The notes under the pieces are model-generated. The model did not search any database, was not told the origin of the DNA, and saw only the letters and a list, made by a program, of their open reading frames with translations. Positions 10,549 to 57,800 of a stretch of DNA of 64,000 nucleotides are shown piece by piece (position 1 is the first letter of the stretch; each line of letters opens with the position of its first letter). The DNA comes from Guillardia theta CCMP2712. Its lineage: Eukaryota; Protista; Cryptophyta. The DNA is taken from assembly GCF_000315625.1 (NCBI RefSeq), contig NW_005434636.1, positions 455,298 through 519,297 of the forward strand, written 5' to 3'. A program made the position numbers and the translations under genes.

Positions 10549-11263
10549 GGTTTCGAAAGCACCCGTGTTGCACACAGTGTGTTTTTTTGTCTAATGTTGC
10601 AACTTTTGGCCAGGAAGAAACAATTCTATGATTGCTCGATCAAAGCCCTCAGGAAACAAACTATTGCCTCCACGCGGCAACGCTGAAGCTTCTCAATGAC
10701 TGATTGTCACCAGCTGGGTAAGAGCAAGAAAGGGGCACAGATCGGAACGAACGCACGTATAGGGGGCTTGGCTCTGAGATTATGGGAGCGGTCAAGGAGC
10801 CAAGGAAACCGAAGGAGGAGGAGAAGGTGCGGATGAGGAGAGGGAGAGAGTAGGTACGAGAGCAAGGAGCATGACTAGTCGCAGCCCCTGCCAGCCTGCT
10901 GCTACTTGTGCATTGGAGAGCGCATGCCAAGGGATCCAATCGAGTGTAATCGGGGGTAGGGGGTAGAATGATAGGAGAGACTACCCGGTGTTATGAATAT
11001 GAAAAGAGCGGGTGGTGGGGGATTATTGAGTCAACTTGGGTGGGGGTGAAGGGTGCGGGGTGGGTTTGAAAAAGATGCGACCCCCACCCCCCACCCGTAC
11101 CAGTGATAACCACCCCACTACCCTTCTCTCTGTGGCTTCCTTACTTTTACCTACTACACTACCCCCAGAATTACTTCGCATCCACCCCTACCCACCCACC
11201 CTTCCTAATGCCTGGCTAGCTGTTGTACCCGGACTGGCCTAGTTCCGACAAATTTAGTTAGGA

Positions 11264-11409
11264 CCTTGTCAGTTCGCATCGTCGGATCCATAGCCGCATG
11301 GGCCGGCGTCATCCTCTTCCAGGCGATCATGGGAAACTGGCGGCTACGTCGCATTTTCTGGGTCTCGGTGGTTCTGCGATGTGCCGGGGGGATTTTTGAC
11401 ATCCTCATC
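11264..11409 (+). repeat. Captured fragment A: inverted 146-bp copy of 56036-56181 (BT1 transporter exon plus 9 nt of intron)
   Basis: Direct reverse-complement match from ccttgtcagttcgcatcgtcgg to gacatcctcatc. ORFs 11266+ and 56179- share the same translation. Confidence 0.97.
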
Positions 11410-11410
11410 A

Positions 11411-11696
11411 TGACAGCATCGCGCAAGATACCGCTGGATGTTGAGGAATGTGCCTTGCCAACAGCAGCAGTAGAGTCTCTATTACTGAGCAAAAGATGTC
11501 AATCACAAGTCGTGTCCATGATTTCAATAGCACTGATCGTCTGACGAGTGAGGGGCTCTGCCCTTCACGACAAGGACATTCTTGCTTCCTGTTGACATGC
11601 TGCTCTGGTTGTCTTGACTGGCGTAGCTCTCGAGGTCTTGGTCGAAGGAGGAGCGGAATTTAGAGTTCAAGTATCCATACCCCCTCACCTTGGAGT
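11411..11696 (+). repeat. Captured fragment B: inverted 286-bp copy of 53402-53687 (5' part of the gene at 53353)
   Basis: Reverse-complement match from tgacagcatcgcgcaag to cccctcaccttggagt. Only two mismatches noticed, near 11566-11572. Confidence 0.97.
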
Positions 11697-11806
11697 CAAT
11701 GGGGCTGTATGAGGGTCTTAAAAAAGAAAAGTTTGTGGCTCTCGTTTCATCTAAGTTCCCGCCATTACAGACCTGCTATGGTTTCGCCAGACTAACATAC
11801 TATAAC

Positions 11807-13869
11807 ATGCCGAGGAAGAGAAAACGAATTACAGATGATTCAGACAACGGTCAAGAAATAAGTTATTCAAAACCATTCACGAGAGTCGTCAAATGTGGGT
11901 TATACTCGAGACTCAAGGTAGAGAACAGATCGATTTTAGACGTGATCGACAGATGGGTATTACATATCAGTCAGATCACATTAAGAGGCAGTATGATATT
12001 CAACTGTTTTCTGATATGGGGCAGGGATACAGGGAATTTACGATATGTAGTAGATGAAATCAAGAGAGCCAAATCGACCTTTTTCTGGAATGTTTTTACA
12101 CTTGGAATGGAACAACATAGCCGTACAGATAACAAGTATCCAACTCTACAACGTTTCTGGTCAGAGAAAAGACATCTTTTCGTTGATTTATGTAGAATTC
12201 GAGGAGACTCGCAAGCTATTGTATTCGCTGCAAATCAATATGGAACGAATTTCTACCAAGACCTGAAAGCAAATTTTACAAACCGATTGGAAAAGTTCAT
12301 TGCCGAATTCTGCAAAGGAGAGTTACATATTAACCATCAGCAAGAAATCGAAGACGTGAAGAATGTATTGTTTCAAAGGAAAGATTACGAGTTGAAGACA
12401 GAAGTGTTTAACAGGAATAATTCACAGCAGATAGGAACCTTCATCGACCATATGAAACAACTAATTGGATTATCGGGGGACGAAGATCTTTTTAGTTTCA
12501 AATATGACAAATTTGATCATAGGTTGCAGAAAAATCTGTTTGAGATAATCGAGACACACATGTTCATGTTGAAGTTCTTCGAAGATCGTGGTCTCTCGAA
12601 AAAAACATTCAAGGCAGCACCAATGTCGAAATTCGGCAGAAAACATCTAACAATCGATAATGATGTGATGTATTACATTTTGAAAGAAGCGAACAGTTTG
12701 AAACCGGGAGAAGATTACAAATCGTTCATGAGAATAGATCAAACTTTGGATAACTCTAAGAATTTCAGAAGGATTTTCGACTGTTCGAATCTGTTCAGAG
12801 ATCAGAGAGAGGAGATTACAAGTATCACGACAGACGGTGTATCGGTTTGTTTTCGATTCACGTTGATTATCAAAACAATCGATGGACTCGAACAGGAACC
12901 TTCATTGCGCACTACCAAATGGCTTGCCGATAGAAAAAGGGCTGAACGGAAATCGGCGAAGAAGATATCAATATCATACAAAGTATTACATGAAAATTCA
13001 GAATACCAAAGAGAGATCGAAGAATGTAAAAAATTGCCCAAGGGTAATTGCGATCGACCCTGGGAGGAGCGTCATTATATCGGCCGTCGAACAATTCAGA
13101 GATGATCAACAAATAATCAGAAAAAGATTTCAGTTTTCGAGAAAACAATATTATCACGAGTCACATCTGAATCGCAATAAAAAGAAAAGAAAGACGTGGG
13201 ATCAAGATATTCAATCGACATTGCACTATCTCAAGGGGTTCTCGAGTAAGTCTGGCGGCAGTCTATCAAGATTCGAAGACTATCTTCTTGCAGTTACAAG
13301 TCATTGGGAGGAGTTAACTTCGCATTATTCAAAGCGAAAATACGCCAGGATGAAATTCGACATCTACATTTCGAAACGAAAGTCAGTCGACAGGTTTATC
13401 CGTACAATGAAAGGAAAGGGAGAAATAGAACCTGTTATCGCATATGGAAATGCAAGGTTCCCGTCTACAGGACGTCGAGGAGAAAGGCCTGTACCGGTCA
13501 GGTGGATAAGAAGAAGATTCGAGAATCACTACAGAGTCGTAGATGTTGACGAATACCGTACTACCAAGTGCTGTAACGATTGTGGTTCTGAGCTCGATGT
13601 GCTTCGACGGATTGAAAATACAGGGAAAGAACCAGACGAGACCTGTAGGTTGAAAACAAGGAAAAGTGAAGTACGAGGATTGAAATTTTGCAGATCATCG
13701 AGGTAATGTCAAGTTTTGTATACTCCTGTAATTCACCTTTTCATCTAACTGTTATCGTGACAGCTGTAAAGGAAAGCCGATCAAATCCAGGGACTTGAAT
13801 GCTGCACTGAATATACTCACTTGTTTCAATGTGTTTCCTGAAAGACCGAATCACCTACGTCGCCCCTGA
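11807..13869 (+). CDS. Fanzor1: Fanzor1-type RNA-guided endonuclease (eukaryotic TnpB homolog), ~666 aa; one frameshift at ~13028-13035 and one intron at 13703-13763
   Basis: N-terminal basic NLS-like MPRKRKR; SITTDGVSVCFRF; RuvC-I VIAIDPG (D at 13056-58); IAYGNARFPSTG..PVP; rearranged RuvC-II VDEYRTTKCCNDCG (E at 13551-53). After splicing it reads FCRSSSCKGKPIKSRDLNAALNI (RuvC-III D at 13792-94), stop TGA 13867-69. Visibly AT-rich compared with flanking genes. Confidence 0.92.
13703..13763 (+). other. 61-nt spliceosomal intron in the Fanzor gene
   Basis: AG|GTAATG donor, CTAAC branch point at 13745-49, TGACAG acceptor. Removing it deletes the in-frame TAA (13704-06) and restores the C-x4-C zinc pair and RDLNAALNI. 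Confidence 0.9.
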
Positions 13870-14140
13870 GGTGAATTCAATGATTGTTGTCGCCCCCTCC
13901 CTACCCAGACTGCGTCCCTCGGGACTCGATGCCTAATTCCCTGCCTGCCTGCCTGCCCGGTGCATGCCTCCATTATGATCCGATGTTTACGACATGTGAT
14001 CATTGAAGTGACTGACTGGCATCATTTGGTAGGATTCATGTAAGGCTCCAACAACATCCGAAGACAATTTGGCAAAAAAAACAACTGCCGTTGTATGACG
14101 GAGAGTCGCGGCTCTCAATCATACGACGGCAGTTCTGTGC
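13870..14140 (+). ncRNA. Candidate Fanzor omegaRNA (guide scaffold) region
   Basis: Lies directly 3' of the Fanzor stop. Stems seen: ttcaatgat (13876-84)/atcattgaa (13999-14007) with tgtcg/cgaca; hairpin gtccctcgggac; possible pseudoknot gatgcc (13928)/ggcatc (14018); long hairpin 14083-14134. Boundaries are unknown. Confidence 0.55.
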
Positions 14141-14351
14141 GAAAACTTAGTTCGTCGTCACATCATGTCACATCATGAGGGAGAGTACCCGTGGTAGATA
14201 GATTCGTGGCGTTTATCTATTAGGAATAGGCAATCGGGTTCAATAAAAGGAAATGGCAGGGGTGGGGTGAGGTACCCACCCCATCATTGATTGGTCTAGT
14301 GGGGGTATCGGAGGGTGCTCTTGTTAAGAGCGGGGGTCCTCAACTGCCGCA

Positions 14352-16193
14352 ATGCGCGGGGTGGCGATGGTGTCGATAGGGATGCTGATTGCGATAGAGG
14401 TTGGAGGTTTCATGGCACTTGCTGCAGCCACTGCCAGTCATGCGTCCCCTCTGTTCCTCGCTCCACCTTCGTCACCTCCGTTCAAAGCTCATAATGGCTT
14501 CAATTTCCGGGAGAGAATGCTGAAACATCCGCTTTACAGCGCGTGCAAAACTGAGGGTGGAGAAGATTCTTCAAAGAGATTCCTGGGTTCGAGGAGGCTT
14601 GCACTGATTCGAAATGGCTTCAGAAAAGGGACCATGCCCCTGGACCCGCAGGTTCGTTTCCTGGGATCGAGAAGACTTGCCTTTATCATTCGAAACCTTT
14701 TGAAACCGCAGTACATCGACGCTGTCAGAGAGAATCAGACAGGGCGAATTGCGTTGGCATCGAAGGAATTTGAGGTTCAAATGGTCGAACTCAAGAAGGA
14801 CACTGAAATTGAAGATCAGACATCTGTTCAGATACTTGAAGCACCCCCGGACATAGTGCGCTCCTTCTCATTGGGAGGGGAGCATAAGTTCCAGCAAGCA
14901 AGGGAAGAGATTTACAGCCTAGCTATTCCCGTGTTCCTGGAACAGATTTCAAAGCTTGAAGAGGTTTCTTCGTGCGATGAAGTGAAAGGGCCGCTAGACA
15001 ACACAACATCCGAAGTCTATCTGGCATGGAGATGGGGCAGCAAGGATGTGTCAACCAAGATTGTCATATCTCATGATTTCCCTTCAGGATTTAGAGTTTC
15101 AACTTCAGACCATAAATTGCTTGCAGTGTCAGGGAGTTTCGTCTTCAGCCAGCAGCAGCATGGCTCATGTGCTTTGCGTTACAACTTGGACGTGGAGCAC
15201 GAGGTGACCTTGCCTCTCAACGAGTCTGCAGTTGCAGCGGCCCTGAAGCGATCGTGTACGGAGATAGCGCAGAGGAGAACTAAGACTCAACAACCAGACG
15301 CCGAGCTCCAAGTCCAGCCTTCCGTCGAAGGATCGCGTTCTCCATCCAAACCATCACCACCGAAGAGCACGAAGCATGGCGCGCACCATGACTCAGAGGC
15401 CATGTCCGTCTCAAGATCTATGACTGTACATGCACCATCCACGATATGTTTTCAGATTGCTTCTGATGTACACAGCTATCCTGAGTATCACCTCTCCGTT
15501 GCCGTGCGAAGTGATTGATGCAAGTGACAGGTGGGTTCCTGCAGTCAAGAACGTCAAGGTTCTATCAACCCTGGACGAGGTGAAGATAGGTCTTTCATCC
15601 ATGGCAATGAGAAGATAGCAGGGCAAGGCGTCTCAAGCCGAGCTCACTTTCTCGGCTCTTGGATACAGCCTGTCGTACATGGTGGACTACGATTTAGGGT
15701 GAGAGGACCCAGCAGTGCCAGTTGGCAAGGATGACCAGGGTCTGTAGCAACTCGCCGCACGCGTTCAGCTGGGACTCATTTGGGAACGGCCCGGGATCAA
15801 TCGAGGTGGCCGTGTGACCTTGAGGTCTCTGTGCTGAAACAGTTGCAGGGCTCGTATGGCTTCGAGAGCCTGGGAGAGAACACGACGAAGATACACTACA
15901 AGCTGACCATTGACCCCGGGATGAAGGTTTGAAAGATTGCCAGAGGTTGAGGCATGGTGACATCTCGAAAGGTACCGCACTTTATCAAGAGCACATTGAT
16001 GAATACGATTGCACACTCAGCCCTCCAGGTGGATATCTAGCACATGCATTTCATTCCTTGATCCATTGTGGATACTCAGGGGCTAGCGAATCGAATCAAA
16101 GACGTTGAAGGGTCCCCAGGTAACCCTCCTCCCTATTTCTTTTGTGCGAGCAGCTATCAGAGATGCTCTCCTAGATTTGCGCGTGTTCCCTGA
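14352..16193 (+). CDS. SRPBCC/polyketide-cyclase (COQ10/START-like) domain protein with signal/transit-like N-terminus, multi-exon
   Basis: Hydrophobic N-terminus followed by an S/P/R-rich stretch. SVSRSMTVHAPSTICFQIASDVHSYPE|WVPAVKNVKVL is a typical SRPBCC domain start. Confidence 0.65.
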
Positions 16194-17581: not shown

Positions 17582-18682
17582 GGCGTTAGCAAAATCCACA
17601 CGGGGGTGTTCAAAGAGGCGTGTACGTTTCCTTAGAGGGTCTCTATAGTCAATACAAAATAGTTACTTACCATGTCTATAGTCAATTCAAAATTGAGCAG
17701 TGAGAGATGAGGGAAAAGTATAAGGGATAGAGAGGAGGAGGGGAGATGAAGACGAAGGAAGTGGAGGAGGAACAAGACAACCTAACCATTACCAAAAGTT
17801 GGGATGCTATCGGGAATATGAGCTCCTTGCACCGCGTGCATACATATATTTGATCGTTGTCGAACAACAATGCGATTGATCGTTTCTTCAAGGCAATGCA
17901 AGGCTGTTGATGTGTTTCATTTGTGATTGGGATACGACTTGTGCTGATTGAGGCAAACGGATTGATACGCAGGTAGAAATAGATGCTAAGAAACACAAGG
18001 TTGTTGCGATCCAATGGGGCTTCAAGGTCCTACTCAAACTATTTTGAAGGAATGAAATCATATGTATACTTTATTCTTGTGCGGATGGTTTGCGGACGAA
18101 CACATAAATCACATCGACTGAGGATCTCTCTTGGATCTGAGGAGGTTGAGTTCATTTGACCCATCTCCCATATCAGCACTAAGCCCGGTTGTCGATGCCC
18201 AAGTTACCAGCCTGCTCCTCTCTTGTCTGGTGGCAAACCCCCAAGATCCCCCCCGTCCTGGTCCGGCGCTGCGGTGTAACTTCAGGTCAACTAACAGAAT
18301 CAGAGGCGTAGATATTATTCTTGGTCTTTCTTGTAGGCTCAAATACGACGACCCTGGTACATCAGGTTGGTGGACGGGGTGGTGGTCGCCGCCCGTGCTG
18401 AAACTCATCATCAGTACGAGGACAATCAGGAGGACTCATGCAGTTTCAGGCGCATGTCCCTCTGACCCTGCCAGCAGCAGGAGCGGTGGGAGGTGGGGTA
18501 GGGGTAGCGGAATCTATCTTGTCGACCTCGAAAGGACCGAACACAGGGATACGGGGGTAGTGGACTGAAGTTGACAGAAGAAAAGGGGGTAGGGGGTGTT
18601 TGGTACTCCCCCCACTACACCTACTTACACGAAACGAAAACCCTCGGGCAACAAGATCCCCCTTCCTCGCACAGCGACTAAC

Positions 18683-19127
18683 ATGCTCTCTGCCGTCCGC
18701 GTCTTCCCCAGACGAAAAGCCCTCCATGGCGCCCTCCTCTTCTACAAGGGTAGCCGAGGCGTCAACCTCAAGCTCTCTACCATCCAAGCCCTCTTCCACC
18801 TCCCGCAGACTAAGGCTGCCGCCTCCCTGGTACCGATGCTGCCCTGTGTCTGACGAGGTAGCTCTGACTGGTCTACAGGGGCTGTCTCTGACGGCGTTCA
18901 AGAGCGCGCGCCGGCGGCTCGGCATCTCCCGATGGCCGTACGAGCGGAAGGCGTCTGGCGACAAGAAGATCGCTGCTGCACAGCGGAAGCCACGGCGGGG
19001 ACGGGACTCGGGGAGGACGGGGACGGGAGGGAGACAAGACGAAGACGTAGAGGACGGGACGGGGCCGCTGGATCCGGAGTGGATCGCATGGTACATGACG
19101 ACGAGCGAGGACGGGGGGCTATCATGA
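18683..19127 (+). CDS. RWP-RK domain protein, copy 1 (131 aa; exons 18683-18829 and 18879-19127)
   Basis: Removing the 49-nt GTACCG..CTGAC..CTACAG intron gives ..VFPRRKA..VNLKLSTIQALFHLPQTKAAASL|GLSLTAFKSARRRLGISRWPYERK..WIAWYM*, an RWP-RK motif. Confidence 0.9.
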
Positions 19128-20460
19128 GGAGGAGGAAGGGGGGGCAGAGAACAGATGCAAGTGGAAGGGAGGGTAGCCCCACATGCTGTCTAGAGAGAAA
19201 TCTTATTTGTAACATTATGCAATCATAGCATGAGAAGAGCATTGTGTTGAATACCACGAGGAGACATTGGAACATACAAACTTCGAGTGTAACTTAGATC
19301 ACCAGAACAAAAAGAAGGCTCGGCTTAGAAGGCAGACCGACTGCTAGTTGTTGGGGCCAAACCTTCATGCTCATATAAATCTTGAATGCATCTGTCGTCT
19401 GTCGTTAGCCGTCTTTCACGTTGACTAAGGATCTTCCACCTGAGGCTCTCGGGCCTCCGCACTCATACCTGGACCGGGCTGGTTCGGGATTCCACCATGA
19501 CTCACTGACCCGCTCAACCAAAGATCTCGTCATGGTGCAAGCTATACCATTCATCACCTGCTCAAGGCCCTTTCTTCCCTTCACTGCAGGTACGGATGGT
19601 CCTCTTCATGCTGACGCTTTGCAGGTTCTACCAGGTACTGCAGATCACAATGGAGCCACACTGACAGCAGGGAGGGAGGGATGCGCTCAAGAGGAGGTGC
19701 ATGGAGACCCCTGCGTTTCGCTGTTTGCGTGCTCGCCTGTTTCGGCAGCATCGAGCTCGGAGGTGTCTTTCCGCCCTTCTGCAGGAGACGTGCGCTACTA
19801 CTTGTTCTCCAACTCTTTATCCTACTTGTTGTGTGTGCATTCACTCCTGTGGTTGGTGTAGGGGTTTGAGCTGCCTCCTCTCATGTCCATGTGTGCATCT
19901 GGGGCGGATTTGTCTAGCCTACTTGCAGGCTACCTCCAATGCTGTACTCATCTTGTGACTGTCAGCTTTCACATTTTCACTTATCTTTGACCGTCAGGTT
20001 TAAACGTTTGTAGGCGCATTAACGATGACCCTGGCATATAAAATACCCTTTCCCTGACTAGTAAAAATGCCATTTCCCACTGTTGGCTTTCGAGGATATA
20101 TAACCTCTTGACTCTGAATAGACTTGCATGTGCAACCTCTCGGCGCTGGCGTGTCCGCCCAGAAGGATGAAGGGACTCCCCGGACGTTGCAGGGTCAGTG
20201 CGGCGTACTAAACTTGTGACCTCTTGCCATGCCGATCCCCAACACTGGCAAGTTCGCTGCCATCAGGCGCATTTCCCTCTGACCCTACCAGCAGGAGCGG
20301 TGGGAGATGGGGGACCTAACACACAGATAAGGGGGTAGTGGACTGAAGTTGACAGAAGAAAAGGGGGTAGGGGGTGTTTGGTACTCCCCCCAAAACTACT
20401 TATTAAACGAAACGAAAACCCTCGGGCAACAAGATCCCCCTTCCTCGCACAGCGACTAAC

Positions 20461-20905
20461 ATGCCCCCTGCCGTCCGCGTCTTCCCCAGACGAAAAGCCC
20501 TCCATGGCGCCCTCCTCTTCTACAAGGGTAGCCGAGGCGTCAACCTCAAGCTCTCTACCATCCAAGCCCTCTTCCACCTCCCGCAGACTAAGGCTGCCGC
20601 CTCCCTGGTACCGATGCTGCCCTGTGTCTGACGAGGTAGCTCTGACTGGTCTACAGGGGCTGTCTCTGACGGCGTTCAAGAGCGCGCGCCGGCGGCTCGG
20701 CATCTCCCGATGGCCGTACGAGCGGAAGGCGTCTGGCGACAAGAAGATCGCTGCTGCACAGCGGAAGCCACGGCGGGGACGGGACTCGGGGAGGACGGGG
20801 ACGGGAGGGAGACAAGACGAAGACGTAGAGGACGGGACGGGGCCGCTGGATCCGGAGTGGATCGCATGGTACATGACGACGAGCGAGGACGGGGGGCTAT
20901 CATGA
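20461..20905 (+). CDS. RWP-RK domain protein, copy 2
   Basis: Same 445-bp two-exon cassette as copy 1. Confidence 0.9.
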
Positions 20906-21643
20906 GGAGGAGGAAGGCGGGGAAGGAGGAAGGGAAGGAGGATACGATGGTGTAGAGTAATGATGTTTGTAACATTATGCAATCATAGCATGAAGGAGTC
21001 GGCTGAATGAATAACGCAAACATTCTTCTCGCATAGAGGAGACAATGGAACGCTTGATTGCATCTCAGAGTTGTGCAGGATTCTTGAAAGCTTAATCTCA
21101 GAGAAAGCAGCAGCTGAAAACCATAAAAGCCGATCGACCCACGGACTAGGTTGCAATCTGGACACTGAAGTGAGGACTGGCTAGGCTATTACCATGAGCA
21201 CGTCGCGATCCAGGATTGAACAAAGACGAATCTATCCCACCCTATCACGGCTGATTCTTGCATCAGGTAGGATGTACCTGTTAGCTGCATAATGATCGGC
21301 TTCCCCCCCCCTCCCCCCCCGCTCTTGATGCTCAATTAGATGTTGAACGCGTGTCGTCACTGGTGCCTACCTGTCGTAGAAGGAACTCTTGCCCAGGATA
21401 CACTGCATGGTAGTAGGAAGTAGGTATTCTGCTCCGACCTTGAGTGACACAAGGAGCAGCGGAGAGGACAACCCATCGGTCTTGAAATTTAGTTCATGAC
21501 AGAAACGGTCCCTTCGAATCCTTCGGCAGTTTCAACAAGTGAATCAGATTCCTAGATTATGTATGTCTCAGATTCCGAGATCCAAGTCCTAGATTAGCAT
21601 ATCATGTCTTTCGCATGCATTCTCACCATGGGCATCTATCAAT

Positions 21644-21743
21644 CCCCAGACGAAAAGCCCTCCATGGCGCCCTCCTCTTCTAGAAGGGTAGCCGAGGAGT
21701 CAACCTCAAGCTCTCTACCATCCAAGCCCTCTTCCACCTCCCA
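21644..21743 (+). pseudogene. ~100-bp fragment of RWP-RK exon 1 with premature TAG
   Basis: ccccagacgaaaagccc..cttctagaagggtagcc..ccacctccc, embedded in spacer DNA. Confidence 0.85.
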
Positions 21744-22155
21744 GTGAACTTAGAGACATCTATCTTCTGCTTCTCTATCTTCTTCATCCTTACTTTACTC
21801 GTGACGTTGACAATCTCTGTGTTGTGTATACAACAGAATCAGATTCCTAGATTGTGTATGTCTCAGATTACCAGATCAAGTCCTAGATTAGCATATCATG
21901 TCTTTCGCATGCATGGGCATCTGTCAGTCTACATCTGTATCGATTCATTTGTAGCAATGTCAGGGTCTAAAGGGACACGAGTGCGTGCCCTACTCTACTT
22001 GGTAGAGCATTCTACTTGGTACCAATGTTTTACTCATCCACCAAGGAGCAAGCTCACCCGGTCGCATCTCTACGCGTCCTCGTGACTGATTTTCTTCAGT
22101 TAAAACCGCCGTGTAAAACAACCTTCCCCACTTTCCTTACATCCCCGCCCCTGCC

Positions 22156-22543
22156 ATGCCCCCTGCCGTCCGCGTCTTCCCCAGACGAAAAGCCCTCCAT
22201 GGCGCCCTCCTCTTCTACAAGGGTAGCCGAGGCGTCAACCTCAAGCTCTCTACCATCCAAGCCCTCTTCCACCTCCCGCAGACTAAGGCTGCCGCCTCCC
22301 TGGTACCGATGCTGCCCTGTGTCTGACGAGGTAGCTCTGACTGGTCTACAGGGGCTGTCTCTGACGGCGTTCAAGAGCGCGCGCCGGCGGCTCGGCATCT
22401 CCCGATGGCCGTACGAGCGGAAGGCGTCTGGCGACAAGAAGATCGCTGCTGCACAGCGGAAGCCACGGCGGGGAGGACGGGGGGCTATCATGAGGAGGAG
22501 GAAGGCGGGGAAGGAGGAAGGGAAGGAGGATACGATGGTGTAG
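22156..22543 (+). CDS. RWP-RK domain protein, copy 3, with a ~107-bp deletion in exon 2 and a frameshifted C-terminus
   Basis: RWP-RK motif intact. The deletion runs between ggacgg-like repeats and gives the tail KPRRGGRGAIMRRRKAGKEEGKEDTMV*. Confidence 0.8.
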
Positions 22544-23232
22544 AGTAATGATGTTTGTAACATTATGCAATCATAGCATGAAGGAGTCGGCTGAATGAAT
22601 AACGCAAACATTCTTCTCGCATAGAGGAGACAATGGAACGCTTGATTGCATCTCAGAGTTGTGCAGGATTCTTGAAAGCTTAATCTCAGAGAAAGCAGCA
22701 GCTGAAAACCATAAAAGCCGATCGACCCACGGACTAGGTTGCAATCTGGACACTGAAGTGAGGACTGGCAAGGCTATTACCATGAGCACGTCGCGATCCA
22801 GGATTGAACAAAGACGAATCTATCCCACCCTATCATGGCTGATTCTTGCATCAGGTAGGATGTACCTGTTAGCTGCATAATGATCGGCTTCCCGCCCCCC
22901 CCCCCCCCCCGCTCATGATGCTCAATTAGACGTTGAACGTGTGTCGTCACTGGTGCCTACCTGTCGTAGAAGGAACTCTTGCCCAGGATACACTGCATGG
23001 TAGTAGGAAGTAGGTATTCTGCTCCGACCTTGAGTGACACAAGGAGCAGCGGAGAGGACAACCCATCGGTCTTGAAATTTAGTTCATGACAGAAACGGTC
23101 CCTTCGAATCCTTCGGCAGTTTCAACAAGTGAATCAGATTCCTAGATTATGTATGTCTCAGATTCCGAGATCAAGTCCTAGATTAGCATATCATGTCTTT
23201 CGCATGCATTCTCACCATGGGCATCTATCAAT

Positions 23233-23332
23233 CCCCGGACGAAAAGCCCTTCATGGCGCCCTCCTCTTCTAGAAGGGTAGCCGAGGCGTCAACCTCAAGC
23301 TCTCTACCATCCAAGCCCTCTTCCACCTCCCA
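23233..23332 (+). pseudogene. Second ~100-bp RWP-RK exon 1 fragment with premature TAG
   Basis: Duplicate of 21644-21743. Confidence 0.85.
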
Positions 23333-23746
23333 GTGAACTTAGAGACATCTATCTTCTGCTTCTCTATCTTCTTCATCCTTACTTTACTCGTGACGTTGAC
23401 AATCTCTGTGTTGTGTATACAACAGAATCAGATTCCTAGATTGTGTATGTCTCAGATTCCGAGATCAAGTCCTAGATTAGCATATCATGTCTTTCGCATG
23501 CATGGGCATCTGTCAGTCTACATCTGTATCGATTCATTTGTAGCAATGTCAGGGTCTAAAGGGACACGAGTGCGTGCCCTACTCTACTTGGTAGAGCATT
23601 CTACTTGGTACCAAAGTTTTACTCATCCACCAAGGAGCAAGCTCACCCGGTCGCATCTCTACGCGTCCTCGTGACTGATTTTCTTGAGTTAAAACCGCCG
23701 TGTAAAACAACCTTCCCCCCACTTTCCTTACATCCCCGCCCCTGCC

Positions 23747-24191
23747 ATGCCCCCTGCCGTCCGCGTCTTCCCCAGACGAAAAGCCCTCCATGGCGCCCTC
23801 CTCTTCTACAAGGGTAGCCGAGGCGTCAACCTCAAGCTCTCTACCATCCAAGCCCTCTTCCACCTCCCGCAGACTAAGGCTGCCGCCTCCCTGGTACCGA
23901 TGCTGCCCTGTGTCTGACGAGGTAGCTCTGACTGGTCTACAGGGGCTGTCTCTGACGGCGTTCAAGAGCGCGCGCCGGCGGCTCGGCATCTCCCGATGGC
24001 CGTACGAGCGGAAGGCGTCTGGCGACAAGAAGATCGCTGCTGCACAGCGGAAGCCACGGCGGGGACGGGACTCGGGGAGGACGGGGACGGGAGGGAGACA
24101 AGACGAAGACGTAGAGGACGGGACGGGGCCGCTGGATCCAGAGTGGATCACATGGTACATGACGACGAGCGAGGACGGGGGGCTATCATGA
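23747..24191 (+). CDS. RWP-RK domain protein, copy 4 (WITWY variant)
   Basis: Same 445-bp cassette; carries the gatccagagtggatcaca variant. Confidence 0.9.
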
Positions 24192-25017
24192 GGAGGAGGA
24201 AGGCGGGGAAGGAGGAAGGGAAGGAGGATACGATGGTGTAGAGTAGTAATTGAGATGTTTGCAACATGCTTTCACTCACTCCTGTTTGGTCTCAAGCGAT
24301 CAGTTGCTTTGTTTTTTGTTACATTCTTTGCGCATGGTCAAGCTTCTAGTACAAAAGTCTTGCTGGCAAAGATGAGTGGAGCCTGTGGCGACTGGTAGAC
24401 CGAGGATCACGTCGCATCTTTGTCCTGATCGCTGTAGTCGCCCCTTCCCCCCCCTTGTCAGCAGGGATCGTAACCCTTCCCTTCATCACCCCTACCTCCC
24501 GCCCCGAATTCCACATCCAACGCACTACTCAGAGAGCTTGTGTCTGTTGGAAACGGTGAAGGGACCTCACGGAAAATATCTGTCAGCTGCCAGTTGCGAC
24601 TCGAGTGGTTACATGATTATCCGGAACCTTGCGACCTCGGGATCCAGTCGCAATTTCTCCTACCCCTCCATCCTAGTGCTGTGAGAGGGGATGGTGGAGG
24701 AGGTAAATTTCGGAATTCTCCGAAGGGAGTGGAAACAGGGGAGAGAGGAGGGTGGTGGGAGGTGGGGTACGAAAATCTTGTTACCCGTGACTTGCCTTTA
24801 CCTCTCAAAGAACCTACCCCTCCCCCCCCCCCCTCCCTGCACAGTGCGTGCCCTACTCTACTTGGATGTCTATCCCCTTGTAGTAGGGGTTTTGAGAAGT
24901 TTGCGTGGATTTCTGGGTAGGGGTGGTACCAAGAGACGAGACAAGACAGCTTCTGTACTCCCACTAGAACCTAGCACAGCAGTTGCTCCGCACTCCCTCG
25001 ACATCCCCGCCCCTGCC

Positions 25018-25462
25018 ATGCCCCCTGCCGTCCGCGTCTTCCCCAGACGAAAAGCCCTCCATGGCGCCCTCCTCTTCTACAAGGGTAGCCGAGGCGTCAA
25101 CCTCAAGCTCTCTACCATCCAAGCCCTCTTCCACCTCCCGCAGACTGAGGCTGCCGCCTCCCTGGTACCGATGCTGCCCTGTGTCTGACGAGGTAGCTCT
25201 GACTGGTCTACAGGGGCTGTCTCTGACGGCGTTCAAGAGCGCGCGCCGGCGGCTCGGCATCTCCCGATGGCCGTACGAGCGGAAGGCGTCTGGCGACAAG
25301 AAGATCGCTGCTGCACAGCGGAAGCCACGGCGGGGACGGGACTCGGGGAGGACGGGGACGGGAGGGAGACAAGACGAAGACGTAGAGGACGGGACGGGGC
25401 CGCTGGATCCGGAGTGGATCGCATGGTACATGACGACGAGCGAGGACGGGGGGCTATCATGA
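25018..25462 (+). CDS. RWP-RK domain protein, copy 5
   Basis: Same 445-bp cassette. Confidence 0.9.
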
Positions 25463-26416
25463 GGAGGAGGAAGGCGGGGAAGGAGGAAGGGAAGGAGGAT
25501 ACAATGGTGTAGAGTAGTAATGATGTTTGTAACATTATGCAATCATAGCATGAAGGAGTCGGCTGAATGAATAACGCAAACATTCTTCTCGCATAGAGGA
25601 GACAATGGAACGCTTGATTGCATCTCAGAGTTGTGCAGGATTCTTGAAAGCTTAATCTCAGAGAAAGCAGCAGCTGAAAACCATAAAAGCCGATCGACCC
25701 ACGGACTAGGTTGCAATCTGGACACTGAAGTGAGGACTGGCAAGGCTATTACCATGAGCACGTCGCGATCCAGGATTGAACAAAGACGAATCTATCCCAC
25801 CCTATCACGGCTGATTCTTGCATCAGGTAGGATGTACCTGTTGGCTGCATAATGATCGGCTTCCCCCACCCCCCGCTCTTGATGCTCAATTAGATGTTGA
25901 ACGCGTGTCGTCACTGGTGCCTACCTGTCGTAGAAGGAACTCTTGCCCAGGATACACTGCATGGTAGTAGGAAGTAGGTATTCTGCTCCGACCTTGAGTG
26001 ACACAAGGAGCAGCTGAGAGGACAACCCATTGGTCTTGAAATTTAGTTCATGACAGAAACGGTCCCTTCGAATCCTTCGGCAGTTTCAACAAGTGAATCA
26101 GATTCCTAGATTGTGTATGTCTCAGATTCCGAGATCAAGTCCTAGATTAGCATATCATGTCTTTCGCATGCATGGGCATCTGTCAGTCTACATCTGCATC
26201 GATTCATTTGTAGCAATGTCAGGGTCTAAAGGGACACGAGTGCGTGCCCTACTCTACTTGGTAGAGCATTCTACTTGGTACCAAAGTTTTACTCATCCAC
26301 CAAGGAGCAAGCTCACCCGGTCGCATCTCTACGCGTCCTCGTGACTGATTTTCTTCAGTTAAAACCGCCGTGTAAAACAACCTTCCCCCCACTTTCCTTA
26401 CATCCCCGCCCCTGCC

Positions 26417-26861
26417 ATGCCCCCTGCCGTCCGCGTCTTCCCCAGACGAAAAGCCCTCCATGGCGCCCTCCTCTTCTACAAGGGTAGCCGAGGCGTCAAC
26501 CTCAAGCTCTCTACCATCCAAGCCCTCTTCCACCTCCCGCAGACTGAGGCTGCCGCCTCCCTGGTACCGATGCTGCCCTGTGTCTGACGAGGTAGCTCTG
26601 ACTGGTCTACAGGGGCTGTCTCTGACGGCGTTCAAGAGCGCGCGCCGGCGGCTCGGCATCTCCCGATGGCCGTACGAGCGGAAGGCGTCTGGCGACAAGA
26701 AGATCGCTGCTGCACAGCGGAAGCCACGGCGGGGACGGGACTCGGGGAGGACGGGGACGGGAGGGAGACAAGACGAAGACGTAGAGGACGGGACGGGGCC
26801 GCTGGATCCGGAGTGGATCGCATGGTACATGACGACGAGCGAGGACGGGGGGCTATCATGA
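26417..26861 (+). CDS. RWP-RK domain protein, copy 6
   Basis: Same 445-bp cassette. Confidence 0.9.
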
Positions 26862-27815
26862 GGAGGAGGAAGGCGGGGAAGGAGGAAGGGAAGGAGGATA
26901 CAATGGTGTAGAGTAGTAATGATGTTTGTAACATTATGCAATCATAGCATGAAGGAGTCGGCTGAATGAATAACGCAAACATTCTTCTCGCATAGAGGAG
27001 ACAATGGAACGCTTGATTGCATCTCAGAGTTGTGCAGGATTCTTGAAAGCTTAATCTCAGAGAAAGCAGCAGCTGAAAACCATAAAAGCCGATCGACCCA
27101 CGGACTAGGTTGCAATCTGGACACTGAAGTGAGGACTGGCAAGGCTATTACCATGAGCACGTCGCGATCCAGGATTGAACAAAGACGAATCTATCCCACC
27201 CTATCACGGCTGATTCTTGCATCAGGTAGGATGTACCTGTTGGCTGCATAATGATCGGCTTCCCCCACCCCCCGCTCTTGATGCTCAATTAGATGTTGAA
27301 CGCGTGTCGTCACTGGTGCCTACCTGTCGTAGAAGGAACTCTTGCCCAGGATACACTGCATGGTAGTAGGAAGTAGGTATTCTGCTCCGACCTTGAGTGA
27401 CACAAGGAGCAGCTGAGAGGACAACCCATTGGTCTTGAAATTTAGTTCATGACAGAAACGGTCCCTTCGAATCCTTCGGCAGTTTCAACAAGTGAATCAG
27501 ATTCCTAGATTGTGTATGTCTCAGATTCCGAGATCAAGTCCTAGATTAGCATATCATGTCTTTCGCATGCATGGGCATCTGTCAGTCTACATCTGCATCG
27601 ATTCATTTGTAGCAATGTCAGGGTCTAAAGGGACACGAGTGCGTGCCCTACTCTACTTGGTAGAGCATTCTACTTGGTACCAAAGTTTTACTCATCCACC
27701 AAGGAGCAAGCTCACCCGGTCGCATCTCTACGCGTCCTCGTGACTGATTTTCTTCAGTTAAAACCGCCGTGTAAAACAACCTTCCCCCCACTTTCCTTAC
27801 ATCCCCGCCCCTGCC

Positions 27816-28260
27816 ATGCCCCCTGCCGTCCGCGTCTTCCCCAGACGAAAAGCCCTCCATGGCGCCCTCCTCTTCTACAAGGGTAGCCGAGGCGTCAACC
27901 TCAAGCTCTCTACCATCCAAGCCCTCTTCCACCTCCCGCAGACTGAGGCTGCCGCCTCCCTGGTACCGATGCTGCCCTGTGTCTGACGAGGTAGCTCTGA
28001 CTGGTCTACAGGGGCTGTCTCTGACGGCGTTCAAGAGCGCGCGCCGGCGGCTCGGCATCTCCCGATGGCCGTACGAGCGGAAGGCGTCTGGCGACAAGAA
28101 GATCGCTGCTGCACAGCGGAAGCCACGGCGGGGACGGGACTCGGGGAGGACGGGGACGGGAGGGAGACAAGACGAAGACGTAGAGGACGGGACGGGGCCG
28201 CTGGATCCAGAGTGGATCACATGGTACATGACGACGAGCGAGGACGGGGGGCTATCATGA
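27816..28260 (+). CDS. RWP-RK domain protein, copy 7 (WITWY variant)
   Basis: Same 445-bp cassette; shares exon-2 SNPs with copy 4. Confidence 0.9.
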
Positions 28261-28824
28261 GGAGGAGGAAGGCGGGGAAGGAGGAAGGGAAGGAGGATAC
28301 GATGGTGTAGAGTAGTAATTGAGATGTTTGCAACATGCTTTCACTCACTCCTGTTTGGTCTCAAGCGATCAGTTGCTTTGTTTTTTGTTACATTCTTTGC
28401 GCATGGTCAAGCTTCTAGTACAAAAGTCTTGCTGGCAAAGATGAGTGGAGCCTGTGGTGACTGGTAGACCGAGGATCACGTCGCATCTTTGTCCTGATCG
28501 CTGTAGTCGCCCCTTCCCCCCCCTTGTCAGCAGGGATCGTAACCCTTCCCTTCATCACCCCTACCTCCCGCCCCGAATTCCACATCCAACGCACTACTCA
28601 GAGAGCTTGTGTCTGTTGGAAACGGTGAAGGGAACTCACGGAAAATATCTGTCAGCTGCCAGTTGCGACTCGAGTGGTTACATGATTATCCGGAACCTTG
28701 CGACCTCGGGATCCAGTCGCAATTTCTCCTACCCCTCCATCCTAGTGCTGTGAGAGGGGATGGTGGAGGAGGTAAATTTCGGAATTCTCCGAAGGGAGTG
28801 GAAACAGGGGAGAGAGGAGGGTGG

Positions 28825-28924
28825 NNNNNNNNNNNNNNNNNNNNNNNNNNNNNNNNNNNNNNNNNNNNNNNNNNNNNNNNNNNNNNNNNNNNNNNNNNNN
28901 NNNNNNNNNNNNNNNNNNNNNNNN
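28825..28924. other. Assembly gap (100 N)
   Basis: Run of n inside the array. Confidence 1.
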
Positions 28925-29114
28925 CCCCCCCTCCCCTGCACACCGCACCCCCACCCCGTTCGATGTCTATCCCCTTGTAGTAGGGGTTTTGAGAAGTTTG
29001 CGTGGATTTCTGGGTAGGGGTGGTACCAAGAGACGAGACAAGACAGCTTCTGTACTCCCACTAGAACCTAGCACAGCAGTTGCTCCGCACTCCCTCGACA
29101 TCCCCGCCCCTGCC

Positions 29115-29559
29115 ATGCCCCCTGCCGTCCGCGTCTTCCCCAGACGAAAAGCCCTCCATGGCGCCCTCCTCTTCTACAAGGGTAGCCGAGGCGTCAACCT
29201 CAAGCTCTCTACCATCCAAGCCCTCTTCCACCTCCCGCAGACTGAGGCTGCCGCCTCCCTGGTACCGATGCTGCCCTGTGTCTGACGAGGTAGCTCTGAC
29301 TGGTCTACAGGGGCTGTCTCTGACGGCGTTCAAGAGCGCGCGCCGGCGGCTCGGCATCTCCCGATGGCCGTACGAGCGGAAGGCGTCTGGCGACAAGAAG
29401 ATCGCTGCTGCACAGCGGAAGCCACGGCGGGGACGGGACTCGGGGAGGACGGGGACGGGAGGGAGACAAGACGAAGACGTAGAGGACGGGACGGGGCCGC
29501 TGGATCCGGAGTGGATCGCATGGTACATGACGACGAGCGAGGACGGGGGGCTATCATGA
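29115..29559 (+). CDS. RWP-RK domain protein, copy 8
   Basis: Same 445-bp cassette. Confidence 0.88.
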
Positions 29560-30513
29560 GGAGGAGGAAGGCGGGGAAGGAGGAAGGGAAGGAGGATACA
29601 ATGGTGTAGAGTAGTAATGATGTTTGTAACATTATGCAATCATAGCATGAAGGAGTCGGCTGAATGAATAACGCAAACATTCTTCTCGCATAGAGGAGAC
29701 AATGGAACGCTTGATTGCATCTCAGAGTTGTGCAGGATTCTTGAAAGCTTAATCTCAGAGAAAGCAGCAGCTGAAAACCATAAAAGCCGATCGACCCACG
29801 GACTAGGTTGCAATCTGGACACTGAAGTGAGGACTGGCAAGGCTATTACCATGAGCACGTCGCGATCCAGGATTGAACAAAGACGAATCTATCCCACCCT
29901 ATCACGGCTGATTCTTGCATCAGGTAGGATGTACCTGTTGGCTGCATAATGATCGGCTTCCCCCACCCCCCGCTCTTGATGCTCAATTAGATGTTGAACG
30001 CGTGTCGTCACTGGTGCCTACCTGTCGTAGAAGGAACTCTTGCCCAGGATACACTGCATGGTAGTAGGAAGTAGGTATTCTGCTCCGACCTTGAGTGACA
30101 CAAGGAGCAGCTGAGAGGACAACCCATTGGTCTTGAAATTTAGTTCATGACAGAAACGGTCCCTTCGAATCCTTCGGCAGTTTCAACAAGTGAATCAGAT
30201 TCCTAGATTGTGTATGTCTCAGATTCCGAGATCAAGTCCTAGATTAGCATATCATGTCTTTCGCATGCATGGGCATCTGTCAGTCTACATCTGCATCGAT
30301 TCATTTGTAGCAATGTCAGGGTCTAAAGGGACACGAGTGCGTGCCCTACTCTACTTGGTAGAGCATTCTACTTGGTACCAAAGTTTTACTCATCCACCAA
30401 GGAGCAAGCTCACCCGGTCGCATCTCTACGCGTCCTCGTGACTGATTTTCTTCAGTTAAAACCGCCGTGTAAAACAACCTTCCCCCCACTTTCCTTACAT
30501 CCCCGCCCCTGCC

Positions 30514-30958
30514 ATGCCCCCTGCCGTCCGCGTCTTCCCCAGACGAAAAGCCCTCCATGGCGCCCTCCTCTTCTACAAGGGTAGCCGAGGCGTCAACCTC
30601 AAGCTCTCTACCATCCAAGCCCTCTTCCACCTCCCGCAGACTGAGGCTGCCGCCTCCCTGGTACCGATGCTGCCCTGTGTCTGACGAGGTAGCTCTGACT
30701 GGTCTACAGGGGCTGTCTCTGACGGCGTTCAAGAGCGCGCGCCGGCGGCTCGGCATCTCCCGATGGCCGTACGAGCGGAAGGCGTCTGGCGACAAGAAGA
30801 TCGCTGCTGCACAGCGGAAGCCACGGCGGGGACGGGACTCGGGGAGGACGGGGACGGGAGGGAGACAAGACGAAGACGTAGAGGACGGGACGGGGCCGCT
30901 GGATCCGGAGTGGATCGCATGGTACATGACGACGAGCGAGGACGGGGGGCTATCATGA
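30514..30958 (+). CDS. RWP-RK domain protein, copy 9
   Basis: Same 445-bp cassette. Confidence 0.88.
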
Positions 30959-53352: not shown

Positions 53353-54847
53353 ATGAAGGGTTTGGACCGGTCAGTCCCAGTCAGCAACGAATCAATCCGC
53401 AACTCCAAGGTGAGGGGGTATGGATACTTGAACTCTAAATTCCGCTCCTCCTTCGACCAAGACCTCGAGAGCTACGCCAGTCAAGACAACCAGAGCAGCA
53501 TGTCAACAGGAAGCAAGAATGTCCTCGTCGTCAAGGGCAGAGCCCCTCACTCGTCAGACGATCAGTGCTATTGAAATCATGGACACGACTTGTGATTGAC
53601 ATCTTTTGCTCAGTAATAGAGACTCTACTACTGCTGTTGGCAAGGCACATTCCTCAACATCCAGCGGTATCTTGCGCGATGCTGTCACGTGGTTGTATTT
53701 TGACACTTGGTCTTGTCATCGTTCAAGGATATCTCGACAGTCCCCTGCCTTCAGCTCAACGACCTCAGGTCGTCAAGGATGCTCGTCCGGGTGGAAGCCA
53801 TGAGAAAGGACCTGCGTCGCAAGAAGGAGCCTCGTTCGAGCAAGTGGACTTGAGCTTTGAGGAGGAGCCAACCTACTCTCAGTTCACCGAGGAAGAGGAC
53901 TACATGTCCATGAGCCATGCGTTTCACCGTCTGGGAGAGTGAGAGAGGATGAATTGTGGGCCTTGATGCGATGACTCCACCGTCCTCTTCGCAGGTTGGA
54001 GTCAAAGAATTTATTGCCCGAGGTCGTGTGCAACAGTTTGCTGCAAATGTTTGTTGCTTTTCAGGTAGGCACAAACACTTATGAGGATGATGATGAGGAG
54101 GAGAAGGAGGAGAAGGAGAAGGTGGTCGTGGTGGTGGAGGAGGACTCACGCCTCTGCAGGCCGATGAAGACAACCCAAACGCAGAGAAGTTGGCAAAAAA
54201 AATCCGGAGAGCCTTGGCAAGAATCGCAGAGAGCGAAAAAACGAGCCCTCCACCTTCCTTCCGAGTTGATAGCAAGACCAAGAAGCTCCTCCAGCATCCC
54301 CCTCCTCCTCCAGGCCTCCTCGACGCCCTCCCGAAGCGCACAGGAGGGTCAAGCGTGCACTCGTCGCCTCTGGCACAAAGCTTGCGAGGTCCAGGAGGGT
54401 CAAGCACAAATACATCTCCTCTAGCACAAAGTTTGCCAAGGTCCAACAGCCTCTCCCCAGGTCAGAACAGTCGCAAGTGAACCTGTTCCTTCCTCCTCCT
54501 CCTCGTCCCTTGTCCCTCGTCCCTCTTCCACTCCCTCTTCCTTGCCCCTGCTCCTGCTCCCTCCTAGCCACACGTTGATGCCTGCATCAGTGGCCAAGTC
54601 TCGGAACTCGGAGGACGAGGACGATCTCCTGCGGATGCTCAACAACAAGGACGAGGCCAAGTCGGCGCCCGGGAGCCGAAAGTCGTCGATCGCTGAGAGC
54701 CTCCCACAGTTCCAGATACTACAGAACTTCCGGCCCAAGAAGTTAATTCAAGGCGGTTCCGAGCGCTCCTTCCAGCTCGACCTCAAGCACCAGCTGGGCA
54801 AGGCGAGCCTGCGGGACCAGGGGAGCACGCAGAGTCTGTTTGACTAG
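53353..54847 (+). CDS. Hypothetical low-complexity multi-exon protein
   Basis: Chain of S/P/E-rich ORF segments separated by plausible introns. No domain recognised. Confidence 0.45.
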
Positions 54848-57800
54848 CAGAGGGCAGGTAGCAGCTCATGAAGTCCTCCCTCTTCCCCTCCGCTCACCCC
54901 ACATGCCTCACGAGGACAAACGCTCCTTTTACAGCAGAGGCGCTCTGATCCAGCATCGTCAGCTTGGTTTGAGCAGGACCAGACGGACCTGTCTGACTTG
55001 ATCGACAGATCAGACACGTTGCTCATCTCTCTCTCCCTCCTATCGCTCTCCTCCTCCTCCTCCTGCGGGGCTCCCGTGCCGCCTGCGGCACGACAAGTCT
55101 CAGTGCGATCCCCTCGTCTCCCCTCCCCCTACGAGCTCCACCGAGAAGATCGTCGGTGATCTTGAGATCTGTCGGCAGAGCGTCAACAACAGGAGGGAGG
55201 CAGCAGCTCGACCCCACCAGGGATCAAGTAGAAGGTGAGGGGGACGAGGAGAAGAGGCAGGAAGATGTGCGCGACGGCGATCAGGAGAGACAGGCCGTCC
55301 CAGCTGAAGATTACCTCACATGCTCAAGTCTGACTGACAAACTTGCTGTCTACCTGCAAGGCGCGTCTGTGCGGATGTTGAAGATGGTGATGAAGAAGAC
55401 GCCGACAGTGCGGGAGACTGGAGGCATGTTGTCAAACTTCCTCTCTAGCTGATCCCGGCTTCAATAAACCGCCAAAAATGCTTCTCACCTTGCTGACCGA
55501 AGTTCTGGAAGCCGGCCTTGAATGATGACGTCAGCACAAGCTCGAGGATGAGAGGGAGGAGGAGCGAGGAGAGGAAGGAGAGAAAGCTGCCTCACGAGCA
55601 TCGCGTAGGTCGTGGCTTCCAGGTCCTTCGCGCAGAGCTTCGAGGTGAGAACGACTGGATCCACGTCAGCTCCTCTGCTTCTCCTCGCGCTCGACGAGCT
55701 CACCGGCAGGCATGAAGTTGAGGGTATAGCAAACTTCGTAGATGATGGCGTCCCCGATCTTGCCTCCCGTCATTCGATGCAGAGAACCACAAAAAAGATC
55801 ACCATGTACATGGTCTTGTCCGATATCCCTGTCCCATCCAGTCACTCTACATCCTCGATCTCGTTCTTGTCCTTCTCTCCTCCCCATCCTTACCCCTCTC
55901 CATCCCTTCCTCCCCTCCCTCACAGAGACTCACAAGCATTCGCCCCAACCCCCTGCGTGCTCGTCCCTCCTTATCTCTTCCGTTCCTCCTCCCTCCTCCC
56001 TCCTGCTCACCAAGCCTTCGGTTCCACCGATTGACGATGAGGATGTCAAAAATCCCCCCGGCACATCGCAGAACCACCGAGACCCAGAAAATGCGACGTA
56101 GCCGCCAGTTTCCCATGATCGCCTGGAAGAGGATGACGCCGGCCCATGCGGCTATGGATCCGACGATGCGAACTGACAAGGCGTGACGAGGAGAGAAGAG
56201 GACAGGAGGGAAGAGGGAGAGGGAAGGGAGAGGGAGAGGAGGAGGGAGAGGGAAGGGAGAGGGAGAGGAAGAGGGAGAGGGGCAGTAGGAGAAGGGCAGT
56301 AGAAGAGGGTTGGCAAGTCGGGAAGATCGAGAGGGGAGGAGAATGAGTGGTACCGTAGGTGCTGTAGTAGGTGTAGTCGAAGTGAGGACCGCCAGGCACG
56401 CACTCCTCCTGCGAAAGTGTCAGATTTGATGACAGGGGGAGGAGGAGGAGGAGGAGGAGGAGGAGGAGGAGGAGGAGGAGGAGGCACCTCAGCAGTGAAC
56501 CAGTAGTCGAGCGCTCCTCCTCTGCCGATGTTTCCGTCACACAGCGCACAGAGAGTTTCAAGGCGAGGAGAGAGGAGAAAGGATGGGAAAGAAGCGACAG
56601 AGGAGAGGAGGCGGAAGATGGGTAAGGAGGTAAGGGGGAAGAAGTTTTGGGCGGAGAAAGGGAGGAAGGTCGACATTTGAACGTAGAGAGCGGCGTCCAA
56701 AAACATGAAGAGATTGCAGAGAGCAAGACGACGAGGTAAGCAAAATTGTCTGGAATAGAAACGATCAGTAGCAGCAAAAGGGTGAAGAAGAGGAGCAGAG
56801 GAGGGGAGAGAAGAGGACGAGGAAGAGGACGAGGAAGAGGAAGAGGAAGAGCGAAGGCAGGAAATCAAAGTCTCACGCCATCACACACAGGACGGCAGAT
56901 ACTGTGATGGTATAGCCGAGCTGATGGAGCGAGCGGGGTCAATCTCACAGGGAGAGCAGCTCCGGACTCACCTGCACGGCAATCTGCTTAGAGAAGTAGA
57001 GGTTGATGATCGCCTGCGAGGAAGGAGACGGTCAGCTGGCGCTTTCAGGGCAGCAGGAGAATACTTGCACTAGAGCGGCAAGGGCCATGCAGAGCGCAAG
57101 ACCTGGAGATAAGCTAGCATGTCAAAGAGGAGCAACTTGAGGAGCAGGAACGGACCGAAGAGCTTCTGGTGCTCTTTGAACTTGTTCCATCGGAACTGTG
57201 AAGCAGCGTCAGCGGAACCCAGCGCCCTCCCAGCTCGTCGCCCTACTCCTCTCATCGACGCAGGTTGTACAGGGTCGCTCAGCCAGCCGAGGGCTACTGG
57301 AATCATGACCTGCGGCATGTCAGACGACCAGGAAAAGACTGTTTGCCCTGATGCCCTTCCTTTCCTCTCCCTCTCCTGTTGCTGTTGCTGTTGCTTCCTC
57401 TCGTTTTTCAGCCGCCCATCCCCTCCCATCCTCTCCTCATCCACCTGTGCTGCTATAGGAAAGCAGATCCAGAAGATACTCGAGATGTGTCCCTTGTCCG
57501 AGATAGGGCCTGGTGAGCGATCGCGATGAGGAGGAGGCACTGAGAGGCACTAGCAGAGGATCTCCTCTTAAGTGGGGAGGGAGCGCGAGATCGTCTCGAC
57601 AAAGGAGAATGGACAGCTTAGAGCTTCTTCTGACCTGTTATCCCAGCTGCACATAAACTTCCCACATGGTAGGTCGCCCACACCCAGGTGACGATGTCTC
57701 CTCCCGTCTGAGCAGGACGTGAGCAAGAGAGGCAGCAAGGCTAGGGATACATGCGGTCGCATGCGCATCAGCTCTGCGTACTTCCCTTCGCACCTGAGAT

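Follow-up and report, generated by a model that had tools for sequence, protein, structure and literature searches.

The 433 bp of host sequence standing in front of a Fanzor gene in Guillardia theta are probably the scar left when a single double-strand break at the left end of one Fanzor copy was repaired with templated filler, i.e. a repair-mediated duplication. This host DNA is not cargo that the element picked up. As to the kind of repair, the form of the scar suggests abortive gap repair linked to the transposon end, a narrower proposal to which we give about even chances. The locus has the features of a repair-mediated duplication: the insert is copied, the donor DNA is intact, 83 bp of resident sequence are lost, and the event is a one-off with an unmodified relative. 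The window, which is the whole stretch of 64,000 nucleotides that was analysed (C38:455298-519297), contains both the patch and its donors (Table 1).

By direct comparison, 11264-11409 is the reverse complement of 56036-56181 at every position (146/146 identity), and 11411-11696 is the reverse complement of 53402-53687 with 283/286 identity (mismatches at 11468, 11566 and 11572). The two patch/donor pairs are the two longest inverted repeats of the window according to a repeat finder. The donors, both intact in place, lie 42-45 kb from the patch on the same contig and are separated by 2,348 bp, with the same order and orientation as in the patch. A whole-genome search (87.1-Mb assembly, 669 contigs) found only the patch and the two donors, and the patch is thus single-copy. 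The joint between its two pieces reads CCTCATC-A-TGACAGC; donor A runs on with CGTCAAT, and CACG precedes donor B. Both donors have CGT at this joint where the patch has CAT, giving a microhomology of 3 nt with one mismatch, while the outer joints are blunt (0 nt). The preliminary description had reported nearly identical copies of colinear donors 2.35 kb apart, CGT in the donors against CAT at the junction, and an insert ending 110 bp before the Fanzor ATG (at 11807), and these points were confirmed. Relative to its donors, the patch of 433 nt has three differences plus the junction base. Two of the changes are separated by only 6 nt, a pattern that fits error-prone synthesis. The blunt outer junctions fit ligation of a free fragment as well as they fit priming.

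The donors had been described as two host genes. This is confirmed for only one of them, donor A, an exon of a BT1-family transporter (PF03092, with the match on the patch copy at 11269-11415). At donor B no overlapping ORF has a Pfam match, and the adjacent 231-aa ORF is without a homologue. The claim that the patch derives from DNA and not from cDNA also stands in part. Piece A' keeps about 9 nt that resemble the acceptor of the preceding intron (CCTTGTCAG), and the inner joint lies within the BT1 exon, off the splice sites; together these argue against a spliced RNA as the template, which was rejected, while unspliced nascent RNA is still a possible one. The stretch skipped between the donors would begin with GT but has no AG at its end. 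RNA-like runs contain about 0.20 of the sampled words of the query, in agreement with piece A alone, and no RNA reads over the patch junctions were seen in about 6% of the run.

Two tandem arrays are found in this part of the window. One has a period of 13 nt and about 36 units (52778-53245), lies about 160 bp from donor B, and is possibly a fragile or fork-stalling site near the template region. The other, between the patch and the donors (18500-31000), consists of nine units of 1.3-1.8 kb that are 92-100% identical, and an assembly gap (28825-28924) falls inside it.

Table 1. Features of the repair scar, the adjoining Fanzor copy and the donors (positions within the window).
Feature	Position	Strand	Remarks
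Left flank end TTAGGA (target TTAG + GA)	11258..11263	+	Same six bases at 14220-14225
Filler piece A'	11264..11409	+	Exact reverse-complement copy; BT1 exon in sense plus ~9 nt acceptor-like
Junction base A	11410..11410	+	Both donors G; 3-nt imperfect microhomology at template switch
Filler piece B'	11411..11696	+	Reverse-complement copy of 53402-53687, 3 differences
Fanzor element copy minus left-end nt 1-83	11697..14222	+	Right end intact (...ATCTATTA)
Private indels of the window copy	near 11727, 11752-11755, 11770, 13028, 14158	+	Relative to other copies
Fanzor ORF, split	11807..13706	+	Extra A at 13028 (A6 vs A5)
Right junction TTAGGA	14220..14225	+	Closing TTA of the element followed by GGA from the unique right flank
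Donor B	53402..53687	-	Intact; possible + strand 5' splice site AAG/GTGAGG at 53409/53410
Donor A	56036..56181	-	Intact; BT1-family transporter exon, minus strand gene

The Fanzor family of the window is a repeat of about 2.7 kb with many near-identical copies and without terminal inverted repeats. Twelve near-identical copies were found, counting that of the window, and the family has defined ends behind TTAA/TTAT. Homology of all copies to the window starts exactly at 11697 and stops at 14222. A pattern search for the segment starting at 11697 returned 13 loci, namely 11 with a canonical left terminus, a fragment on contig C63, and the window itself. Fourteen copies were used for comparison (11 near-identical genomic copies, the divergent one on C63, and two in metagenome contigs), and in 14/14 the 83-bp left end is intact directly behind TTAA or TTAT, with no foreign insert. 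In these copies the left terminus reads CCTTTAATCGAC..., with TTAA/TTAT in front of it and unrelated flanks beyond. In 9/10 copies the base after the right-end TTA is the same as the fourth base of the left TTAN, indicating a 4-bp target duplication.

Intact copies have an uninterrupted ORF of 632 aa that matches SpuFz1 (8GKH, the Spizellomyces Fanzor of known structure; E 9.7e-7, residues 375-604), and a match to the Pfam Cas12f1-like TNB family (E 0.008) falls short of the cut-off. GtFz1 has the TAM TTAAN and cuts 14-17 nt into the target, and Saito et al. describe it as having no inverted repeats and no associated transposase (PMC10432273). The TTAA/TTAT target of the window family fits this TAM. 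A perfect 8-bp hairpin (GGACTCCC/GGGAGTCC region) is located about 16 nt from the left terminus, and a TAGATA...TATCTA hairpin stands just ahead of the final TTA at the right end (14190-14222 in the window). The family resembles IS200/IS605-type ends in having subterminal hairpins without inverted repeats, but differs from them in its target duplication.

Several further observations concern the surroundings of the copies. Four of them (L010, L011, L027 and L028) have a common sequence right after the right end (AGTGGATTCCTAAACC...) and different left flanks; this could mean that they share a preferred target within another repeat, that they belong to a longer composite element, or that copies have recombined with each other. 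Private GC-rich insertions of 2-4 nt (CACG, CCAT, GCCG, CTGC and GCCA) occur at scattered positions in several of the copies L007-L012, some of them inside the ORF, and are not TTAA footprints. Motifs of the GGGGTGGGG/CCCCACCCC type are abundant in both flanks of the composite (10950-11260 and 14255-14330) as well as in the flanks of many other copies, and Fanzor copies seem to sit preferentially in GC-rich spacers of this type.

Other truncated copies were considered as second examples of filler and rejected, with no local filler in any of them. Runs of N interrupt L014/L019 and L016, a nested insertion at TTAA breaks up L018, and L015/L017 has a plain internal deletion of 171 bp. The C63 fragment, a candidate for a copy without a left end, belongs to a divergent subfamily and has a left end of its own behind TTAA.

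The window copy alone is without nt 1-83 of the left end, and the patch occupies their place. Thus, the location of the patch upstream of Fanzor, as first described, is real, but the element end that it adjoins is not intact, as the patch replaces the terminal 83 bp. The left flank ends with ...AGTTAG+GA and the right junction reads ...CTATTAG+GAATAGG, so that TTAG is kept on both sides and GA is also common to them. These sequences fit a TTAG target duplication plus a duplicated GA. With TTAG retained on both sides, the flank-side breakpoint is the element boundary to within 2 nt. On the other side, neither the right end nor its flank shows damage. At the element-side breakpoint (nt 83/84), a structural cause was looked for and rejected, as there is only a weak 5-bp hairpin there; the left-end fold has a z of -1.9.

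Compared with nine full-length copies, the window copy carries a private deletion of about 35 nt after 11727 that is flanked by GAAA, a private insertion of 4 nt at 11752-11755, two private deletions near 11770 (57 and 7 nt), an additional A at 13028 (A6 in place of A5) that makes a +1 frameshift in the nuclease ORF, and a CGT-flanked private deletion of 25 nt at 14158, the last relative to the L009-like subfamily. The microhomologies at its private indels are GAAA, AT and CGT. There are nine private indel events in the window copy compared with 0-5 in the others, and those of the window copy are also larger. Only about 5 true private substitutions were counted in 2.4 kb. Some other copies also bear independent 5' deletions. 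The additional A in the 13028 homopolymer could be a sequencing error, and the extra indels of this copy could reflect age or separate events. Because its left terminus is gone, its ORF is broken and its 3' tail is damaged, the window copy is, on its sequence, very probably immobile and non-functional. The 25-nt deletion (14158-14166) lies in the non-coding 3' tail, past the candidate omegaRNA but short of the right end. As a result of the private indels, an ATG at 11699 is in frame with the Fanzor ATG at 11807 and would add 36 codons; in other copies the spacing is not a multiple of three.

Public sequencing runs were compared with 10800-14600 of the window. A 347-nt contig from a 2011 run (X1) spans 11380-11726 with zero differences and thus includes both inner joints (A'/B' and B'/element) as well as the three patch-specific bases. 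In a 2021 run from an independent study (X3), a contig of 6,463 nt passes from the unique left flank into A' and ends 30 letters inside it, at 11293. The overlaps are of 30 letters each, one below the 31-letter bridging rule and the maximum reach of a k=31 contig into a repeat. Depth in X3 is 62-73 on the flanks versus 148 over A', and the depth of the donor B contig (106) fits a mix of single- and double-copy words. The three patch junctions are taken as real, and not as a misassembly. Both flanks of the composite (10600-11263 and 14223-14900) are unique in the genome, which rules out a paralogous empty site there.

In a related strain, the site has neither the patch nor the element. This is seen in an 803-nt contig of a freshwater metagenome run (X6), which connects 11246 with 14260 and contains neither of the two. 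Its flanks differ by about 2-8% from the window, and 109 other letters lie between the matched flanks, versus about 48 expected for a clean empty site, so that the X6 allele differs in some other way too. X6 contains the Fanzor family at about nine times the flank (single-copy) depth. Thus, the composite is younger than the split of the strains, and the presence of the family at this depth beside an empty allele indicates that family insertions are polymorphic between strains. Neither a protein search nor an exact DNA-word search of metagenome collections returned the empty-site contig.

Templated repair of a break, which was among the origins first proposed for the patch, fits these data well, given the 83-bp loss, the fill from two donors, the intact donors and the single copy. 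The scar may have arisen as follows. A break would have occurred at the element boundary or at a vacated site, and repair synthesis primed from the right flank would have copied the element from a sister or homologous copy, proceeding from right to left. Low-fidelity synthesis would have left the private slippage deletions and the homopolymer +1, and would have halted 83 nt before the left terminus. The free end would then have copied donor B, followed by donor A, before being end-joined to the left flank without overlap. We infer the break order, the direction of synthesis and the single-event origin of the scar, and assume that the transposon made the break. As the flank-side breakpoint lies within 2 nt of the terminus, a transposon-linked break is favoured over a random one. 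The combination of an intact right end, a missing left end and an excess of slippage-type indels fits abortive gap repair. Classical abortive gap repair, as seen with Ac/Ds and P elements, leaves both termini in place and removes internal sequence, whereas the window copy has lost a terminus. To our knowledge, excision has never been shown for the Fanzor family of the window.

The closest parallels are the repair-mediated duplications of the human genome, for which 1,136 events were attributed to SDSA, 20 of them with chimeric acceptors (Pace, Sen, Batzer and Feschotte 2009, PMC2671141). In 5/20 chimeric acceptors the second donor was 289-3,432 bp from the first, and one had a 3-nt overlap (PMC2671141). 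The scar in the window is similar in that hundreds of bp were copied from single-copy DNA of the same chromosome into a mobile element, leaving the donors intact. It also shares with such duplications a two-donor chimera, an overlap of about 3 nt, a deletion at the breakpoint, a duplicated exon, and an empty site in relatives. Most donors of the vertebrate cases are less than 5 kb away, with 58/1,136 on the same chromosome beyond 5 kb (PMC2671141); the present case differs in its cryptophyte host, in donors that are 42-45 kb off, and in a breakpoint that is a transposon terminus.

With regard to the breakpoint, the locus is like the filler DNA at rice DNA transposons, whose boundary breaks almost always leave deletions, filler or both (Roffler and Wicker, PMC4423477). 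In both cases the break is at the element boundary, the loss is one-sided, the fill is copied from foreign sequence, and the derivative is defective. However, rice fillers are 1-123 bp long (PMC4423477), while here 433 bp were filled in two pieces. Serial visits to templates, little or no microhomology, apparently blunt joins and nearby slippage-type indels are also characteristic of SD-MMEJ and of template switching (MMBIR/FoSTeS). SD-MMEJ usually draws on templates no more than tens of bp from the break, and it makes short insertions (PMC2943611). In the comparison with MMBIR/FoSTeS, the locus has two ectopic segments in cis together with slippage deletions, and microhomology at 1/3 patch junctions.

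A break unrelated to transposition or to Fanzor could have occurred at random near the left end of a resident copy; its repair would have deleted sequence and inserted captured or templated DNA, and the other defects would stem from independent decay. Repair-mediated duplications occur genome-wide and have been detected inside transposable elements (PMC2671141), the outer junctions of the patch are blunt, and other copies bear independent 5' deletions as well. Yet the flank-side breakpoint is no more than 2 nt from the element boundary, with TTAG kept, and an element terminus as the breakpoint has been argued to be unlikely at random (PMC4423477); in addition, the private indels of the window copy exceed those of any other copy in both number and size. 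A random origin of the break is therefore credible but unlikely.

A less probable alternative is failed homing by Fanzor itself. The site would have been vacant, either because the element had left or because the homologue was empty; a guided cut would have fallen just right of the insertion point, and copying back would have aborted before the left end. The GtFz1 TAM and its cut 14-17 nt into the target (PMC10432273) are compatible with this, as copies of the window family stand behind TTAA/TTAT, and the polarity of the scar is as if copying had come from the right-end side. A break right of the insertion point would leave on the left side not only TTAG but also the two bases with which the right flank begins, and GA does follow TTAG there, although two extra bases agree by chance in 1 of 16 cases and the target here is TTAG, not TTAA. 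Cut-and-copy is established for bacterial TnpB (10.1101/2023.03.14.532601), but guide-RNA homing has been shown in bacteria only (10.1101/2023.03.14.532601; PMC10432273), and neither excision nor homing for any eukaryotic Fanzor. A tandem right-end-TTAA-left-end arrangement, from which a guide RNA against the left end could have come, was searched for with up to 2 mismatches and gave no match. Moreover, any nuclease or a spontaneous break would leave the same scar. Failed homing is thus improbable.

Capture of host DNA by a programmed or transposon-mediated activity, with the patch as cargo, is close to refuted, whether in the form of Helitron-like capture, Pack-type transduplication or a new acquisition activity of OMEGA elements. 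The patch does adjoin Fanzor sequence and holds a host exon, and in this it resembles Helitron and Pack-type captures. Helitron and Pack-type elements carry their cargo between functional ends and multiply it along with themselves, which is what transposon capture demands; the fragment here exists once, in a copy that has lost one end. Since the left terminus, which is required for mobility, was lost, the patch is not inside a mobilisable unit. The preliminary description had put forward Helitron-like capture, and also an acquisition behaviour that would recur at the same position in other Fanzor copies. The lost terminus and the single-copy patch speak against the former, and the latter is contradicted by the canonical ends of 14/14 other copies, none of which has anything at this position; on other contigs, truncation is accounted for by assembly gaps or a nested TTAA insertion. 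It had also been reasoned that a lack of inserts in other Fanzor copies, together with templated insertions being common genome-wide, would point to a one-off repair event; the first of these is now found. Least likely is an artefact of assembly or cloning, such as a chimeric clone or a mis-join at repeats: the assembly is a draft with gaps and the 2011 reads may be related to the assembly data, but junction contigs come from two studies ten years apart, the patch-specific variants are in the reads, and depth is doubled over the duplicated piece, so the misassembly that had been raised as an alternative is discarded.

What appeared to be a new acquisition behaviour of an RNA-guided nuclease element is thus an ordinary repair scar of a known kind, and a well-resolved one: two donors and three junctions are identified, the target site is preserved, and a relative has an empty allele. 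Repair-mediated duplication, known from vertebrates and plants, operates in a cryptophyte too. Failed homing, in the improbable event that it took place here, would be the first in-genome evidence that a eukaryotic Fanzor is maintained by break-induced copying, as bacterial TnpB elements are. Breaks do occur at the boundary of a Fanzor element, and more scars at Fanzor ends, if found, could reveal how these elements are cut and copied.
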